Source: Diplonema japonicum (lineage: Eukaryota > Protista > Euglenozoa: Diplonemea). Taken from it: a DNA stretch of 64,000 bases. How positions within the stretch are numbered: position 1 is the first letter of the stretch; every line of letters starts with the position of its first letter. Made by a program: the position numbers and the translations under genes. The notes beneath the pieces are model-generated. The model ran no database searches and was not told the DNA's origin. It saw nothing but the letters and a program-made list of their open reading frames with translations. Below are positions 57,711 through 64,000 of this stretch, in pieces. Where the stretch lies: contig OZ025748.1 of NCBI GenBank assembly GCA_964019335.1, forward strand, positions 277,249 through 341,248. The letters run 5' to 3'.

Positions 57711-58072
57711 GGGTGTAAGGGTGTGGGTATTTAGAACACAACAAACAGCGACTGCGACACACCGACCCTCCACATCAACAGGCACATGAGGCACATATTG
57801 TCGTGAATCACTTGTTTCCTTGGACACGTCAACGTGTCACAAATAAAGATCTTTCCCCCCTCCTTTTTAGATATTTTGTTCTTCTGTTGGTTAACGCCCA
57901 TGGTCAGCGGGCAGGATGTTTTGTTCACACAGGGGGGATACCGTTGTTGTTGTTTTGGTATTAAAAAAAAACAAAAAGAAACAGTACAGACGTTTTTATT
58001 CCAGCCCCCCCCCCCCCCCCCCCCCCACCTCAGGTTTTAATACTTGTCAAAAAAAGAAGAAAAAAAACAAAA

Positions 58073-58555
58073 ATGGGTGTCGGCATATCTACTATTGTGG
58101 ATGTTGTGATTCTGGCAACGAGCATCACAGTGCAGGTGACGGTGCGGGGGAATGAGCATGAGTGGGAGAGCCCTCTTCACTGTGCGGCGTTCCGGGCGCC
58201 CTCTACAGGCTCGAAGTTTAATTGGAACCGTGGGCACACGGAGAGGAGGTGGCTACCAGCAGGGGGCGGCAGCTATGTGATGCCAACCATCGAGAGGGAT
58301 TTTTACGGAATGGCCATTACCTCAAACACGCGGTATGTAGTGAAGTGTGGTGTCGACCCAGACTGGGCTTTCAAGAAGTATCTCAAGACGGAAGTGAAGA
58401 CTCTACGTCTGTCCCCGCCGCCAGAACCAAGGGTACGTAAGCCCGCCAAGCCTGCCATAAAGACTGCGCCTGGGAAAGCCCCTCGAGAGCCACCAACCAG
58501 GGCATCCAGGGCATCAGGTTGTTTTTTCTTCGCCGTTCACTTCGGCATGTGTTAG
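58073..58555 (+). CDS. Small hypothetical protein
   Basis: 160-aa ORF with the A-rich ATG context typical of this window. Confidence 0.5.
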   Translation: MGVGISTIVDVVILATSITVQVTVRGNEHEWESPLHCAAFRAPSTGSKFNWNRGHTERRWLPAGGGSYVMPTIERDFYGMAITSNTRYVVKCGVDPDWAFKKYLKTEVKTLRLSPPPEPRVRKPAKPAIKTAPGKAPREPPTRASRASGCFFFAVHFGMC

Positions 58556-60075
58556 TGTCGTACTTCCCCGACTTCCTTTAACTCATTTATACATATTTTT
58601 GGTTTGTTATAACAACCCCTGTATCATCGAAGCACAAATAAAAAAAGGAAAAAAAGCTGTCAGGTGGCTAACGAGACTTTATTGGTAACATTATCCCTCT
58701 CGTGCGAGACCAAACTAGCTTTTTTTTTTTTTTTTTAAAGCGAGTCAAAATGAGTGGGCACTGTGCACTTTTGCCCTCTCAGTGCAATGGGTAACAGAGA
58801 AAGGCATGGGGCTTGACCAAGTGATGGGTTTAATAGTACCAACGCAAAGCCGAGTACCTAACCTCACAAAAGTCTTAACCATTTCTTTTTTGTCTTTTGA
58901 AGTTTCTCTCTCTCTCTCTCTCTTCCTTTTTTTTCCCATTACCGTAGTACCAATTGGTAAAGATTTTTTTTTTGCTAACTTACGAAAGAGTACTGATGTC
59001 AGAAATGTCAACAACAATAGAAAGAAAAAAATGAAGACTTGTGACATCGTTTCTTTTTTTTTTTGTTCTCTTTATCTTTTTCCCTACCCTTTTTTGTGTA
59101 TTCTTTTTTTTGTTGGGGGGGGGACCGAAAGAGAAGAGTAATGGACACGCCGGTTTAAGAGAGGGGTGAACCTAGTGAAGGAGAGCCCCTTTTCTTTGTG
59201 TTTCGCCACATGTGCTTACTTCTCCCCTCTCCCCCCCCTTTTTTTTTCCATTCCCCCGCCGGTATCGCTCTGGGGTCCTTAAGGTCCTCAAGTGGGATTT
59301 GCGCACTGAACATCCTTTTCTGATAACAGGGAAAAAGAACAAATGGGAGAGGAGAAAAATAAAATGCAGCCTTTTTCAGCGACAGTCTTCTTTAGGTCGT
59401 CTGTTAGGGGCGTCATAGAAGCATTTTCCCCCCAATTCATTACAAAAAAAAAAAAAAAAAATAAATAAAAAAAATTGGTCAGAAGTTTTCTGTACCTGCG
59501 ATAAAATCTTTTTTTTTTCTCTTTCTTCCGCCGGTGGGTCGTTAATCAACACCTTCCTGTTAGTTCATCGCAATCGATGAAAAATAACAAAAATAAAAAA
59601 TTGGGTGAATGACAGGGAGGGGGGAGGTGAGGGGTTCTTAACACATTTCACCCCTCCTCTGCATTGACTTTTTGAAGAATCCTTCAATTAACGACAATCT
59701 TAACTAACCATACTTACTCAATAAGAATTTTAAAGAAAAAAGAAAGACTTCCCCTTACTTTCTTTTTTTCTCTTTTTCTTTTCTTTTTTTTTTGAAGCTA
59801 GCTGTGCGCCTCCTGTAGTAAAGTAGACAGTGCTTATGCCACAGGCCTCCTTTATCTCTTATTTATATATTTTACTTTGCCTCTTTAGCATTCACTGCAA
59901 AAGGAAAGAGGCATCTGTCGTTTTCTTTTCCCGTCTTTTTTTCTTCTTTTTCTTTTTTCTTCTTGGTAGACAATGGGGGACGTTCCAAACAGGATTTTCT
60001 TCTTTTGTGGTGATGTGTTTTTCCTGTTTTGATTTTCTTCTTCCCCCGCTCTATGCTTTTTCGCATGGACATTGG

Positions 60076-61518
60076 TCACTCTGCCCCTTTCCCCTTTTTG
60101 ATTTCTCCCTCTTTACCCCTCCTAAATTTTACCCCCTGCCCCACGCATTCCTCCCCAGTTTGTTTTTGAATTTGCCTCTTCTTCTCCTCCCCTTTAAAAA
60201 AAAAAAAAAAAGAAGAGACCCACTCCTTCCTCCCGGGTTTGAATTGGTGGACTTGGGGTTCAGCTTCTTCTACTTCTTCTTTTGTTCCACTACTGAGGTC
60301 AATTACTTGCTGTTGGAGCTCTTTGACAAGTTCAATCCGGTCTTCCTCGTGTGCTGCTCTCTTAGCTTCGAGCGCCTGTGCTTCTTCAAGCTGCTCTTCA
60401 AGCTTTGCCATCGCATCCCTAGCGGCTGCTTCGATTGCTTGCTTCTCAAGATCTTCCATTGCTCTCGTCTTCTCTTCTTCAAGTGCGGAGTCCTTGGCTT
60501 CAATCTCCTGCACCTCCTTCAGCTGTGCTTCGAGCTTGGTGACGGTGTCGTTGCTTTGCTGCATCAGTTCATCATACGCAGCAACCTGACGCTCCAGCTC
60601 CTCAACAGCGGCAATCCTCTTCTCTTCGTGTTCTGCACGCTCTTTCTCCATGTCACGAGATGCCTGTGCCTCTGCCTCGAGGGCTGCAATAGTGTCAACA
60701 GCCACAGAGTCAGGAGACGTCTCTATGCTTTTCATCGTGCGAAGCTTCTCTTCCGTCACCATGTTGTCATTCTTGAGCTGCTTTACCTTGTCTTCAACCT
60801 CTTTCGTGTGCTTCTCAAGTTCCTCGAACGCCTTGATCCTTTCTTCTTCTTGCACTGCTCGTTCACGTTCCAGTTGCCGTGCCTCTTCCTGCTGTGCTTC
60901 AAGCGCAGCGATAGTCTCCCTCGCTTGTGTTTCAGATTCGGAAGGTGCCTTATTTTCATTGGGTTCGCATTCCTTGGCCTTCTCTTCGTGTTCTTTGAGC
61001 TGGGCTTCGAGCTTCGAGATCAGTTCCTTTTTTTGTTCAGAACCTGCGTCTGTGGCAACAGGCTTGCTTAAGGCGGCTTGTTGGTCTTCCATGGTTTTGA
61101 TTCTCTCTTCTTCAAATGCGGACCTCTTGGACTCAAGCTCGTGTGCTTCCTCCAGCTGCGCCTCAAGTTTTGCGATAGTTTCTCGTGATTGTTCGAGTTC
61201 TGTGCTGTGCTGTGCATCGTGGGAAGAGTTCTCAACTTCCAGCTTCTTCAACTGTACTTCGAGCTTGGTGGTTGTCTCCCTGCTGGCGCTCTCTTCAGAG
61301 GTCCGGTTCGACTCAAGTTGCCTTTCAAGTTCCTCCACTGTCTTGATCCTCCCCTCTTCGTTTGCAGATATCTTTGCTTCTAGTTCTTGTGCCTCCTTGA
61401 GCTGGGCTTCCAACGAGTCGATTATCATCTGCAAGTCCCGTTGCTGCGAGCTGTTACTACCCTCCAGTGCCTTGATCCTCTCCTCCTCGTGCGCGGATCT
61501 TTTTGTTTCAAGCTCCAT
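60076..61518 (-). pseudogene. 5'-truncated repetitive coiled-coil protein gene fragment
   Basis: About 7 degenerate repeats of (E/Q)LE.KR.A.EEERIK..EELE. It starts mid-repeat immediately next to the SL copy, and the 3' part decays into homopolymers near 60220. Confidence 0.6.
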
Positions 61519-61522
61519 CCAC

Positions 61523-61560
61523 ACCAACGATTCTAAAGCTACAGTTTCTGTACTTTATTG
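61523..61560 (+). other. Spliced-leader exon copy 1 (38 nt)
   Basis: ACCAACGATTCTAAAGCTACAGTTTCTGTACTTTATTG carries the euglenozoan SL core CAGTTTCTGTACT(T/A)TATTG. Confidence 0.92.
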
Positions 61561-61564
61561 CCCT

Positions 61565-61603
61565 AACCAACGATTCTAAAGCTACAGTTTCTGTACTTTA
61601 TTG
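61565..61603 (+). other. Spliced-leader exon copy 2 (39 nt)
   Basis: AACCAACGATTCTAAAGCTACAGTTTCTGTACTTTATTG. It has the canonical 39-nt length and differs at ~2 positions from the Diplonema SL as I recall it. Confidence 0.92.
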
Positions 61604-62090
61604 GTCGTTCGTGTTCTGCTGGTGCCTGCCGCCTCTGCCTGGGTTTGCCGCTGCGTCCGTCGTCCGTCGTCACCGGGGGGGTTGTTTTGCCCGTCGGCCT
61701 GCCCGCTGCTCAACGAAAGGATCCCCTCCCCCCCAACACACACTATAAAACAAAAAAAAAAAAAATGGATCCAAGACAACTCGCAGGAGGAGGTGACCGC
61801 AGCCGTCATGGCACCGAGACCCACCCAACCAGACAATCTGGTTGGGCAGTATGAATCCCCACCCCCAGCCCCTAGATCCCCCCACCCCCCTTTAGAAAAA
61901 AAAATAATAAAATAAAAAAATCACAAGTAGAGACCGCGGTTTTGACCGCTGCAACCGCCCCTGCTACAGCCACGGCCGCCCCAGCCGCAGCCACGACCGA
62001 CACAACCACGATCGCCGCAGCCGCCCCTGCTGCCTTGAACGCTGCAGCCGCCCCTGCCGCAAGCCCGACCTCCGCAGCCGACCCTGCCAT
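61565..62090 (+). mobile_element. SL-headed repeat unit A (putative retroposed element)
   Basis: SL plus ~390 bp conserved with unit B, then a GCC/GCA-rich mosaic tail. Confidence 0.55.
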
Positions 62091-62810
62091 AGTTGAAGAG
62101 GAAAAAAAAAAGAAGAAAAAGGGGGAAGGGTGGATACTGAAAGATGGCGAGCACCCCCCCCGGGTTGAAGACAGGTGCTGCCCCCGCCTTCCCAGAAGCT
62201 CTGCCTTTCCCTTCCCCTCCCAAAAAAAAAAAAAGAAAAGAAGAGACCCACTCCTTCCTCTCGGGTTTGATTTTTCATCGGTGGACTTGTTGTGTCACAA
62301 CTTTTTATTTTTAAGACTTTTTGAAATTTTTATTTTTGAATTTTTATCATTTGGAGTTGCCTCTTCTTCTTCCCCTCTCCCTCCCATTAGGAAAAAGAGA
62401 AACCCATGCCTTCCTCCCAGGTTGGAACTTGATTGTCTGTTTTGGAATATTTTTTAAAAAAAAAAAAAAGTGTGTACATGGGGGATAAGGTCTACCTCAG
62501 GCCCTGTTACCCATTAGCCCTGTCCTTGGTATGCCTTGATGGTCGGAGGGGGTAAGGTAGCTGGTGTGTGCGTGGTTCCCCCCTGTGCTGTGTATCGGCT
62601 TTCGTTGTGACTGTTGCTGAATACGAAGTAGAAAAAAAAAAGCAAACAAAACAAAAAAAGAAAGCAACAACAAAAAAATGAATAGAGGTTTTTTTTTAAT
62701 TCAAAGTATCTTTTTGTTTTTGATGTTGGTAGGCCATAAAACAACCTTCATTCGCTAACCACATCAAAATCAAAATCTGTATCTTGGACTAAAAAAAAAA
62801 CACCCACTAC

Positions 62811-62848
62811 ACCAACGATTCTAAAGCTACAGTTTCTGTACTTTATTG
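62811..62848 (+). other. Spliced-leader exon copy 3 (38 nt)
   Basis: Identical to copy 1. Confidence 0.92.
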
Positions 62849-63370
62849 GTCGTTCGTGTTCTGCTGGTGCCTGCTGCCTCTGCCTGGGTTTGCCGCTGCG
62901 TCCGTCGTCCGTCGTCGCCGTCGTCCGGGGGGGTTGTTTTGCCCGTCGGCCTGCCCGCCGCTCAACGAAAGGATCCCCTCCCCCCCAACACACACAATAA
63001 ACAAAAAAAAAAAAAAATGGATCCAAGACGACTCGCAGGAGGAGGTGACCGCAGCCGCAGCCGCAGCCCGCAGGAGCAAGCCCGCAGCCCGCAGCACACG
63101 GCGCCGAGACCCACCCAACCAGGCAATCTGGTTGGGCAGTATGAATCCCCACCCCCTAGATCCCCCCACCCCCCTTTAGAAAAAAAAAATAATAAAATAA
63201 AAAAATCACTAGCAGAGACCGCGGTTTTGACCGCCGCTGCTACAGCCACGGCCGCCCCAGCCGCCTGAACGCCGCAGCCGACCCTGCCGCCCTGATCGCC
63301 GCAACTGAGACCGCCGCAGCCGCCCCTGCCGCAGCCACGACCGCCGCGACCACGACCCCTGCAGCCGACA
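62811..63370 (+). mobile_element. SL-headed repeat unit B
   Basis: Homologous to unit A starting from the SL 5' end; the upstream flanks are unrelated. Confidence 0.55.
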
Positions 63371-63403
63371 TCCCACATCAGGAGCGAGGTGGTTGAATGG
63401 ATG

Positions 63404-64000
63404 AAACCCGCAAACCCCGCAAACCCGCAAACCCCGCAAACCCGCAAACCCGCAAACCCGCAAACCCGCAAACCCGCAAACCCGCAAACCCGCAAACCCG
63501 CAAACCCGCAAACCCGCAAACCCGCAAACCCGCAAACCCGCAAACCCGCAAACCCGCAAACCCGCAAACCCGCAAACCCGCAAACCCGCAAACCCGCAAA
63601 CCCGCAAACCCGCAAACCCGCAAACCCGCAAACCCGCAAACCCAAACCCGCAAACCCGCAAACCCCGCAAACCCGCAAACCCGCAAACCCGCAAACCCGC
63701 AAACCCGCAAACCCGCAAACCCGCAAACCCGCAAACCCGCAAACCCGCAAACCCGCAAACCCGCAAACCCGCAAACCCGCAAACCCGCAAACCGCAAACC
63801 CGCAAACCCGCAAACCCGCAAACCCGCAAACCCGCAAACCCGCAAACCGCAAACCCGCAAACCCGCAAACCCGCAAACCCGCAAACCCGCAAACCCGCAA
63901 ACCCGCAAACCCGCAAACCCGCAAACCCGCAAACCCGCAAACCCGCAAACCCGCAAACCCGCAAACCCGCAAACCCGCAAACCCGCAAACCCGCAAACCC
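63404..64000 (+). repeat. (CCCGCAAA)n / (TTTGCGGG)n telomere-like 8-bp array, ~75 units, open at the window edge
   Basis: Read directly from the sequence; occasional 6-9-nt variant units. Confidence 0.97.

Follow-up and report, generated by a model that had tools for sequence, protein, structure and literature searches.

In hosts that rely on trans-splicing, the mRNA of long interspersed nuclear element (LINE)-like elements needs a capped leader for translation, yet the leader that is spliced on normally lies outside the gene; how could an element come to possess a leader of its own? The question is raised by one chromosome end of the diplonemid Diplonema japonicum, in a stretch of 64,000 nucleotides (nt) from contig OZ025748.1 of assembly GCA_964019335.1 (positions 277,249 to 341,248; hereafter “the window”, whose numbering is used throughout), where the 39-nt spliced leader (SL) of the host, a leader of diplonemid type, is written three times into the DNA and twice heads a related unit. 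These units are very probably the 3'-truncated 5' ends of retrotransposons of the type that lacks long terminal repeats (non-LTR), belonging to the restriction-like-endonuclease (R2/CRE-like) group and residing at chromosome ends; they are referred to below as class A. The autonomous family to which they belong carries the leader in its own DNA. Leaders encoded in DNA, together with the clipped “relic” leaders that accompany them, provide a direct and countable record of RNA-mediated propagation in Euglenozoa, and they link CRE/SLACS-type elements, relic leaders of the dinoflagellate style and telomeres built by retrotransposons, three subjects that are usually studied apart. The published genome note on D. 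japonicum YPF1604 (62.3 Mb, 118 chromosomes, 102x HiFi plus Hi-C) makes no mention of telomeres, spliced leaders or transposons (PMC13598402).

Leader-headed units and their full-length relatives

The searched assembly, 62.5 Mb in 132 contigs, holds 220 SL copies in total, and the SL followed by GTCGTYYGTGTT (GTCGTYYGTG) occurs 106 times. Such copies fall into two classes, A, which is the class of the window (GTCGTTCGTG), and B (GTCGTCTGTG); the two have the SL|GTCGT junction in common and are ~70% identical over the first 350 nt. On contig C24, four class B elements, each headed by the leader, succeed one another in tandem at a spacing of exactly 10,659 bp. The class B element is composed of the SL, an untranslated region (UTR) of ~140 nt, an A-run, an ATG that opens an MDPRR reading frame of 2990 amino acids (aa), and a 3' UTR of 1.5 kb that terminates in A9 and CTA, with the next SL directly after. 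Pfam profiles recognize in its open reading frame (ORF) a 2OG-FeII_Oxy_2 (AlkB-like) domain, an OTU domain and the reverse transcriptase (RT) profile RVT_1 (E = 1e-18), while motif matching places YLDD, then, downstream of the RT, CCHC at aa 1831-1848, then RH, RKPAD and IDVTV. The solved structures nearest to the class B RT are R2 proteins, and the best match that carries a name is the “SLACS 132 kDa protein” of D. papillatum, to which 65% of the query aligns at 41% identity. In class A, a copy on contig C76 encodes RVT_1 (E = 7e-17) in an ORF of more than 1176 aa that starts ~630 nt past its SL. The elements lack LTRs, and the 3' end of class B is A-rich. RT ORFs downstream of the leader, which the preliminary description of this locus had suggested looking for, are thus present in class B elements and in the C76 copy, the fragments in the window stopping before the RT. 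That description had also offered two readings as alternatives, reverse transcription of an SL-bearing RNA and the 5' end of a retrotransposon of the CRE/SLACS type located away from the SL array, and the two hold together.

Within the window, the 3' half of the SL (19 nt) is found exactly at 61542-61560, 61585-61603 and 62830-62848, always on the forward strand, where shuffling gives an expectation of 0.00. The three exon copies reported initially were recovered at 61523-61560 (nt 2-39), 61565-61603 (the full 39 nt) and 62811-62848 (nt 2-39). The shared unit that two of them were said to head also exists, and only its size, put at ~0.5 kb, required correction, to ~640 nt for unit 1 and ~560 nt for unit 2. 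The units are 98% identical between 61566-61675 and 62811-62920, 96% identical between 61673-61805 and 62925-63057, and ~79% identical in the later part. In both, GTCGTTCGTG comes directly after the SL, and an A-run situated ~150 nt past the leader leads into an ATG (MDPR...), as had been described (61752-61768 in unit 1, 63003-63020 in unit 2), the context being ATG GAT CCA AG in each case; the ORF of unit 1 meets a stop after 28 codons. The upstream flanks are indeed unrelated, consisting of a coiled-coil fragment and an orphan SL before unit 1 and of an A-run and CACCCACTAC before unit 2. The arrangement is as follows, modX being a ~400-nt A-tailed module that begins with a T-run and ends with an A-run.

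59996 to 60255, forward strand: 5' part of modX, recognized by matches elsewhere in the genome and by contiguity in C16
60256 to 61519, reverse strand: internal fragment (1264 nt) of a coiled-coil gene, with an ORF open throughout the piece, antisense to the SL units
61523 to 61560, forward strand: orphan copy of the SL (nt 2-39), with CCCT as filler after it (61561-61564)
61565 to 61603, forward strand: full 39-nt SL heading unit 1
61604 to 62207, forward strand: body of unit 1, defined by BLAST, with the class A 5' UTR, an A-run (61752-61765), the ATG (61766) and a low-complexity start region
62208 to 62470, forward strand: 3' part of modX with its A-run, 95.6% identical to the modX copy of C16
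62579 to 62808, forward strand: second subtelomeric repeat module, 94.9% identical to the right end of C3, ending in A10 and CACCCACTAC just before the SL
62811 to 62848, forward strand: SL copy (nt 2-39) heading unit 2
62849 to 63370, forward strand: body of unit 2, with the class A 5' UTR, an A-run and the ATG at 63018 (MDPRR...), cut off at 63370
63371 to 63403, forward strand: filler of ~33 nt, unrelated to class A in the alignment
63404 to 64000, forward strand: terminal (AAACCCGC)n octamer array of ~600 bp, reaching the end of contig C101

Unit 1 matches at least eight class A copies in BLAST, at 69-77% identity, all of the matches ending at 62207, and is homologous to positions 1 to ~560 of the 10.66-kb class B element. 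Unit 2 is ~90% identical, up to 63369, to class A copies in C10, C62, C76 and C24. Judged from these alignments, both units are 5'-terminal fragments, far too short for coding. Some observations count against the explanation preferred here: the endonuclease motif is approximate, with KPAD rather than KPD; a clean target-site duplication was not found for class A/B copies; and the window units are short and non-coding, their arrival by subtelomere recombination rather than by their own retrotransposition being conceivable.

The start of the element also has a bearing on how the leader might fold. It had been proposed that the sequence following the exon cannot form the stem of kinetoplastid SL RNA. 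A stem of the kinetoplastid type is in fact impossible, but GGTCGTT (the last SL base and six element bases) can pair with AACGATT (SL nt 5-11), closing the whole leader as a hairpin (61565-61614 and 62811-62860). Class B keeps six of the seven pairs.

Position and orientation at chromosome ends

The distribution of the elements establishes both a telomeric position and a fixed orientation. Among the 100 class A/B copies listed of the 106, ~88 are near a contig end and point toward it. Minus-strand copies are located within 46 kb of the contig start in ~41 of 50 cases, most of them within 11 kb, and ~47 of 50 plus-strand copies are close to the contig end, contig ends being known or inferred; none of those within ~11 kb of an end points inward, and about a dozen are chromosome-internal. 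This bias of strand and end implies that the sense strand runs parallel to the C-rich octamer strand, toward the end of the chromosome.

The contig ends themselves consist of (CCCGCAAA)n octamer arrays, and every end that was read has a single polarity, (GGGTTTGC)n at the left and (GCAAACCC)n at the right. Consequently, the G-rich strand, (TTTGCGGG)n, runs 5' to 3' inward at all contig ends read, which is opposite to canonical telomeres. The sequence (TTAGGG)4 is absent from the whole genome; the terminal repeat is an octamer instead, and its strand polarity is unusual. The window ends where contig C101, and with it the chromosome, ends. Many class A/B copies consist of a short 5' piece, ~60 to 960 nt in length, and some of these are capped directly by octamers, and octamers or partial SLs adjoin some of the SL-proximal junctions (C9, C11, C24). 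Insertion into SL RNA genes, which the comparison with SL-targeting elements had evoked, is not what was observed: the elements are at octamer telomere arrays instead, and none of the nine SL RNA genes seen is interrupted by an insertion.

Several further features of these ends are of interest. At the right end of C11, three tandem partial SLs (nt ~3-24, 3-24 and 3-36) are joined directly to the octamer array, and at the left end of C9 the octamers lead into a partial SL, which GCA separates from a full SL-headed unit. A TERT-like ORF of 1086 aa is located at C41:533974-534300 (Telomerase_RBD, 28.4 bits). In the window, the CCCTAA that appears between the tandem SLs was considered as a telomeric hexamer and rejected, given the absence of TTAGGG arrays; CCCT followed by a full 39-nt SL is the simpler description.

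SL-headed DNA is not confined to classes A and B, nor to telomeres, since chromosome-internal loci carry other SL-headed families, mostly beginning SL|GT... and each equipped with UTR, A-run and ATG; one such internal family (L030) gives a weak OTU match (E = 0.005).

Passage of the leader through RNA and competing explanations

Two kinds of evidence bear on how the leader reached these positions. The first is the border of homology. In 39 independent SL copies outside SL RNA genes, C occupies nt 3 in 100% and A occupies nt 2 in 90%, whereas A at nt 1 is found in only 26%, which is the level of chance; no upstream flank is conserved, the sequences being unrelated from nt 1 upward. Homology therefore starts at SL nt 2, beside unrelated DNA. 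Such a border would be expected from the copying of a capped RNA that stopped before a hypermodified cap-adjacent base, a modification known from kinetoplastids and assumed for this organism. The second kind of evidence is provided by eight relics in the genome in which a full SL is followed by a clipped one, seven clipped after ACAG and one after AAAG, the two motifs that hold the only AGs within the SL; at other spacings, from 0 to 12 nt, there is no relic in the genome. Clipping exactly at these two AGs indicates that transcripts running through a DNA-encoded leader were trans-spliced there and copied back into DNA. These data demonstrate that the SL entered and travels through RNA. The window itself holds no relic, its tandem SLs being full length with filler between them. 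The SL-less parent suggested in the preliminary description, in which an AG acceptor would stand in place of the leader, was not encountered: no class A body in the assembly is preceded by [ACG]G.

Why the leader is retained is a separate question, and confidence in any mechanism is much lower here than for the identity of the element. The leader is perfect in the copies although the adjoining UTR differs by ~30% between classes, which implies that the SL is either under strong constraint or renewed. The element junction, TG|GT, is a non-canonical acceptor, and two candidates could keep the exact SL|GT junction, namely an SL that is encoded in the DNA and provides an internal start, or one that is renewed. 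The preferred reading, reached by analogy, is that the DNA-encoded SL would be part of the transcript and would be kept by selection as an internal start or as a cap-and-translation signal, with occasional re-trans-splicing. Not every junction conforms: in copies L008 and L029 the SL is joined to internal UTR positions after CG and not after AG, and neither simple trans-splicing nor a simple DNA-encoded SL covers every case, a difficulty for the reading just given.

A sequence of events can be proposed on this basis. An element RNA with the host SL at its 5' end would be reverse-transcribed, the DNA copy beginning with SL nt 2, a single base from the cap-adjacent nucleotide, and containing in order the SL, GTCGTTCGTG, the ~150-nt UTR, the A-run and the start of the ORF. 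The cDNA may be primed from the 3' end of the G-rich (TTTGCGGG) octamer strand by target-primed reverse transcription, and priming from this strand would orient the sense strand toward the chromosome end. On reaching the capped 5' terminus, the enzyme might add a few bases and jump to another RNA; such template jumping could yield head-to-tail chains, orphan SLs (61523-61560 with CCCT) and mosaics like the succession of modX, coiled-coil fragment, SL and unit 1. The distal portions would subsequently be lost and the ends re-capped with octamers, as in the succession of unit 2, filler and array. Taken as a whole, this amounts to a tentative scenario, possible rather than probable, in which chromosome ends are built by retrotransposons that use the host SL as their own DNA-encoded 5' end; the SL would act as an internal start and cap/translation signal, giving translatable RNA without trans-splicing, and an RT primed from the inward G-strand of an octamer telomere of inverted polarity would also capture other SL-bearing RNAs, leaving orphan SLs and gene fragments. 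If the SL head does prove to be an internal promoter or cap signal, it would offer a compact expression tool for diplonemids, as well as a new case of a parasite copying an RNA-processing signal of its host.

A different origin of the SL head is conceivable, although unlikely: the leader could be attached during reverse transcription, when the RT jumps from an SL-less element RNA to a free SL exon, to SL RNA or to the leader of another mRNA, so that the head would arise incidentally from template switching at telomeres. The orphan SL with its 4-nt filler before unit 1, the three partial SLs joined to octamers on C11 and the one that follows octamers on C9 could all be read in this manner, as could SL-to-UTR junctions that lie after CG, with a 1-nt ambiguity involving the last G of the SL, and a microhomology jump in C39. 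At C2:150558, moreover, the SL exon and ~85 nt of true intron precede an ORF, with an unrelated upstream flank. However, the SL|GTCGT junction is identical in classes A and B, which differ by ~30% right beside it, and this is better accommodated by an inherited junction. The occurrence of relic SLs at two internal AGs only points to the spliceosome and not to RT jumps, and ~55 of 62 class A body copies are in the set with SL and GTCGT, two of the other ~7 lying behind relic SLs.

Two of the loci just mentioned merit description in their own right. In C39 (8953-9130 of the locus sequence), ~115 nt of a class A 5' end are joined to class-B-like position ~2554 through GGGT microhomology; the junction is an internal deletion or a template switch, and not GT-AG splicing. 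At C2:150558, where the upstream flank is unrelated from SL nt 2 and the intron portion is genuine, the ORF that lies past exon and intron has at least 456 aa and no Pfam match; the locus has the appearance of a retro-copy with unspliced SL RNA at its head, and may hint at how elements first acquired a leader.

It is improbable, and more so than attachment by template switching, that no autonomous retrotransposon is involved and that the units are ordinary processed pseudogenes, or a family of subtelomeric genes, which arose a single time from a trans-spliced mRNA and spread only by exchange of DNA between ends. The subtelomeres are mosaics of common modules (modX, module Y), identity between units 1 and 2 is itself a mosaic that descends from 98% to 79%, and unequal exchange could produce the four tandem elements of C24 with their constant 10,659 bp. 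Against this stand the full-length relatives with RT, CCHC and an endonuclease-like motif in an intact ORF of ~3000 aa, copies that start exactly at SL nt 2 beside unrelated flanks, the presence of some copies inside chromosomes, and relic SLs that bespeak repeated passages through RNA.

Variant SL RNA genes, in which the units would be functional SL donors with a divergent intron, would account for a perfect exon followed by GT and for the ability of the element start to pair with SL nt 5-11; this explanation is nonetheless very hard to sustain once the true genes are considered. Located as the preliminary description had advised, these are the nine of 220 SL copies in which the leader is followed by GTACCCAATCTGATCC; the intron, GTACCCAATC..., is 98 nt long and ends in T6, the upstream flank ...ctaagccttatctgggtttggagaaagaggtccgggaggtta is common to the genes, and on C15 tandem SL RNA genes adjoin a 5S rRNA gene (102.6 bits; locus sequence 1009-1127). 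In the window units a GT 5' splice site stands directly behind the 39-nt exon, and with the true SL intron they share only this “GT”; the suggestion that “exon + GT” is a remnant of the target site stays unproven, there being no likeness to the SL intron past it. They have no T-run of six or more, the sequence running on into UTR and ATG and, in full copies, into an RT ORF; their upstream region is not a promoter common to the copies; and their folding shows no intron-like stability, with z values against shuffles of +0.7 and -0.7 as opposed to -4.1 for true SL RNA. The intron, promoter flank, T-run and 5S linkage of bona fide genes elsewhere thus belong to a different type of locus, and it is established that the window units are not SL RNA genes, as had been surmised. 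The nine SL RNA genes are far outnumbered by SL-headed retro-copies. An Rfam scan of 58000-64000 gave chance-level matches only, and no SL RNA family.

Finally, an assembly artefact or cDNA contamination, whose one recommendation, and a further point against the reading preferred here, is that the window junctions are bridged by no contig of the public runs (de Bruijn contigs, broken at repeats), has a negligible probability in view of the same architecture at ~100 places with strict orientation, an assembly made from 102x HiFi DNA reads and Hi-C (PMC13598402), and ten runs from three studies that contain 40-73% of the words of the window.

Known systems and the surrounding mosaic

Among the closest known systems are SLACS, CRE1, CRE2 and CZAR, which are likewise found in Euglenozoa and tied to the SL; their RT is followed by a CCHC and restriction-like endonuclease region, an order for which class B gives motif matches. 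SLACS and CRE interrupt the exon of SL RNA genes between nt 11 and nt 12, produce a duplication of ~49 bp and borrow the promoter of the gene, whereas the elements described here are located at octamer telomere arrays and begin with the entire SL (nt 2-39), which forms their own 5' end; in addition, class B contains AlkB-like and OTU domains. Telomere-specific elements, namely TRAS/SART of Bombyx, HeT-A/TART of Drosophila and GilT of Giardia, resemble the present family in their fixed orientation to the telomeric repeat, in head-to-tail arrays and in truncated copies capped by the repeat. They have different endonuclease types or none, and are not known to carry an SL. The 5' end of HeT-A faces the chromosome end, while in D. 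japonicum it is the 3' end of the element that does so, and the octamer, unlike the repeats associated with those elements, has its C-rich strand running 5' to 3' to the end.

In dinoflagellates, retrogenes with relic DinoSLs carry a DNA-encoded SL at the 5' end, and repeated rounds clip the leaders at an internal acceptor (PMC6050394, PMC12014239). The DNA-encoded SL at the 5' border of homology is common to both systems, as are relics, represented here by the eight at the two AGs of the SL. In dinoflagellates, however, host mRNAs are copied by a foreign RT, whereas here the tagged RNA is the retrotransposon itself; full leaders are the rule in D. japonicum and relics are rare (8 versus more than 100), and a parent gene with an AG acceptor and without SL was not found in its assembly. 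A functional model for the retention of the SL is offered by Pr77 of L1Tc/ingi/SIDER, an internal Pol II promoter of trypanosomatids whose transcripts are unspliced yet translatable, and to which TBP and SNAP50, factors of the SL RNA genes, bind (PMC1874656, PMC8190864). It is also a short conserved 5'-terminal sequence carried by the element; Pr77 is not an SL, and a promoter role for the SL head is suggested by analogy only. The single pieces are therefore known, as SL-tied LINEs of the restriction-like-endonuclease type (SLACS/CRE), relic leaders, the Pr77 5' hallmark and telomere-specific LINEs. In the literature searched, no account was found of their combination, an autonomous element that has a whole host leader as its 5' end and lies at nearly all chromosome ends, directed outward into a non-canonical octamer array.

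A metagenome scan with the 3' half of the SL returned mostly 5' ends of metatranscripts, which carry little information on DNA-encoded leaders elsewhere. In the environmental contig Ga0163144_10171551, which comes from another euglenozoan, the 3' half of an SL is present internally, with the same relic, TTTCTGTACTTTATTG, after it, and in two metatranscript contigs the SL and SL(nt 6-39) precede ordinary coding sequence.

The units of the window are embedded in a mosaic of subtelomeric pieces, among which modX is matched 43 times in the genome and occurs at more than 40 ends. The matches listed are mostly at low coordinates on the minus strand or at high coordinates on the plus strand, which fits a placement 0.6-5 kb from the contig end with the module pointing to that end, often directly against the terminal array; modX may be a non-autonomous retroelement. 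On C16 the same variant is uninterrupted and contiguous with the counterpart of 62207-62454, while the modX of the window is split by a 1.95-kb insert that comprises the coiled-coil fragment, the orphan SL and unit 1, and that is flanked by a ~70-bp imperfect duplication of modX. A minus-strand Ala-rich ORF at 61872-62090 was considered as a gene and rejected, as it lies within the GC-rich low-complexity start region of the element.

The coiled-coil piece (60256-61519) occurs once in the assembly. It is contained in contigs of 4.7-7.7 kb from public runs X2, X4 and X5, which extend past both of its borders; the piece thus belongs to a longer gene, which seems to be absent from the primary assembly. 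The full gene is perhaps on the other haplotype, and the fragment could have arrived either by way of cDNA or directly as DNA. Run X5 seems to derive from RNA, to judge by its hundreds of joints between the SL and diverse UTRs.

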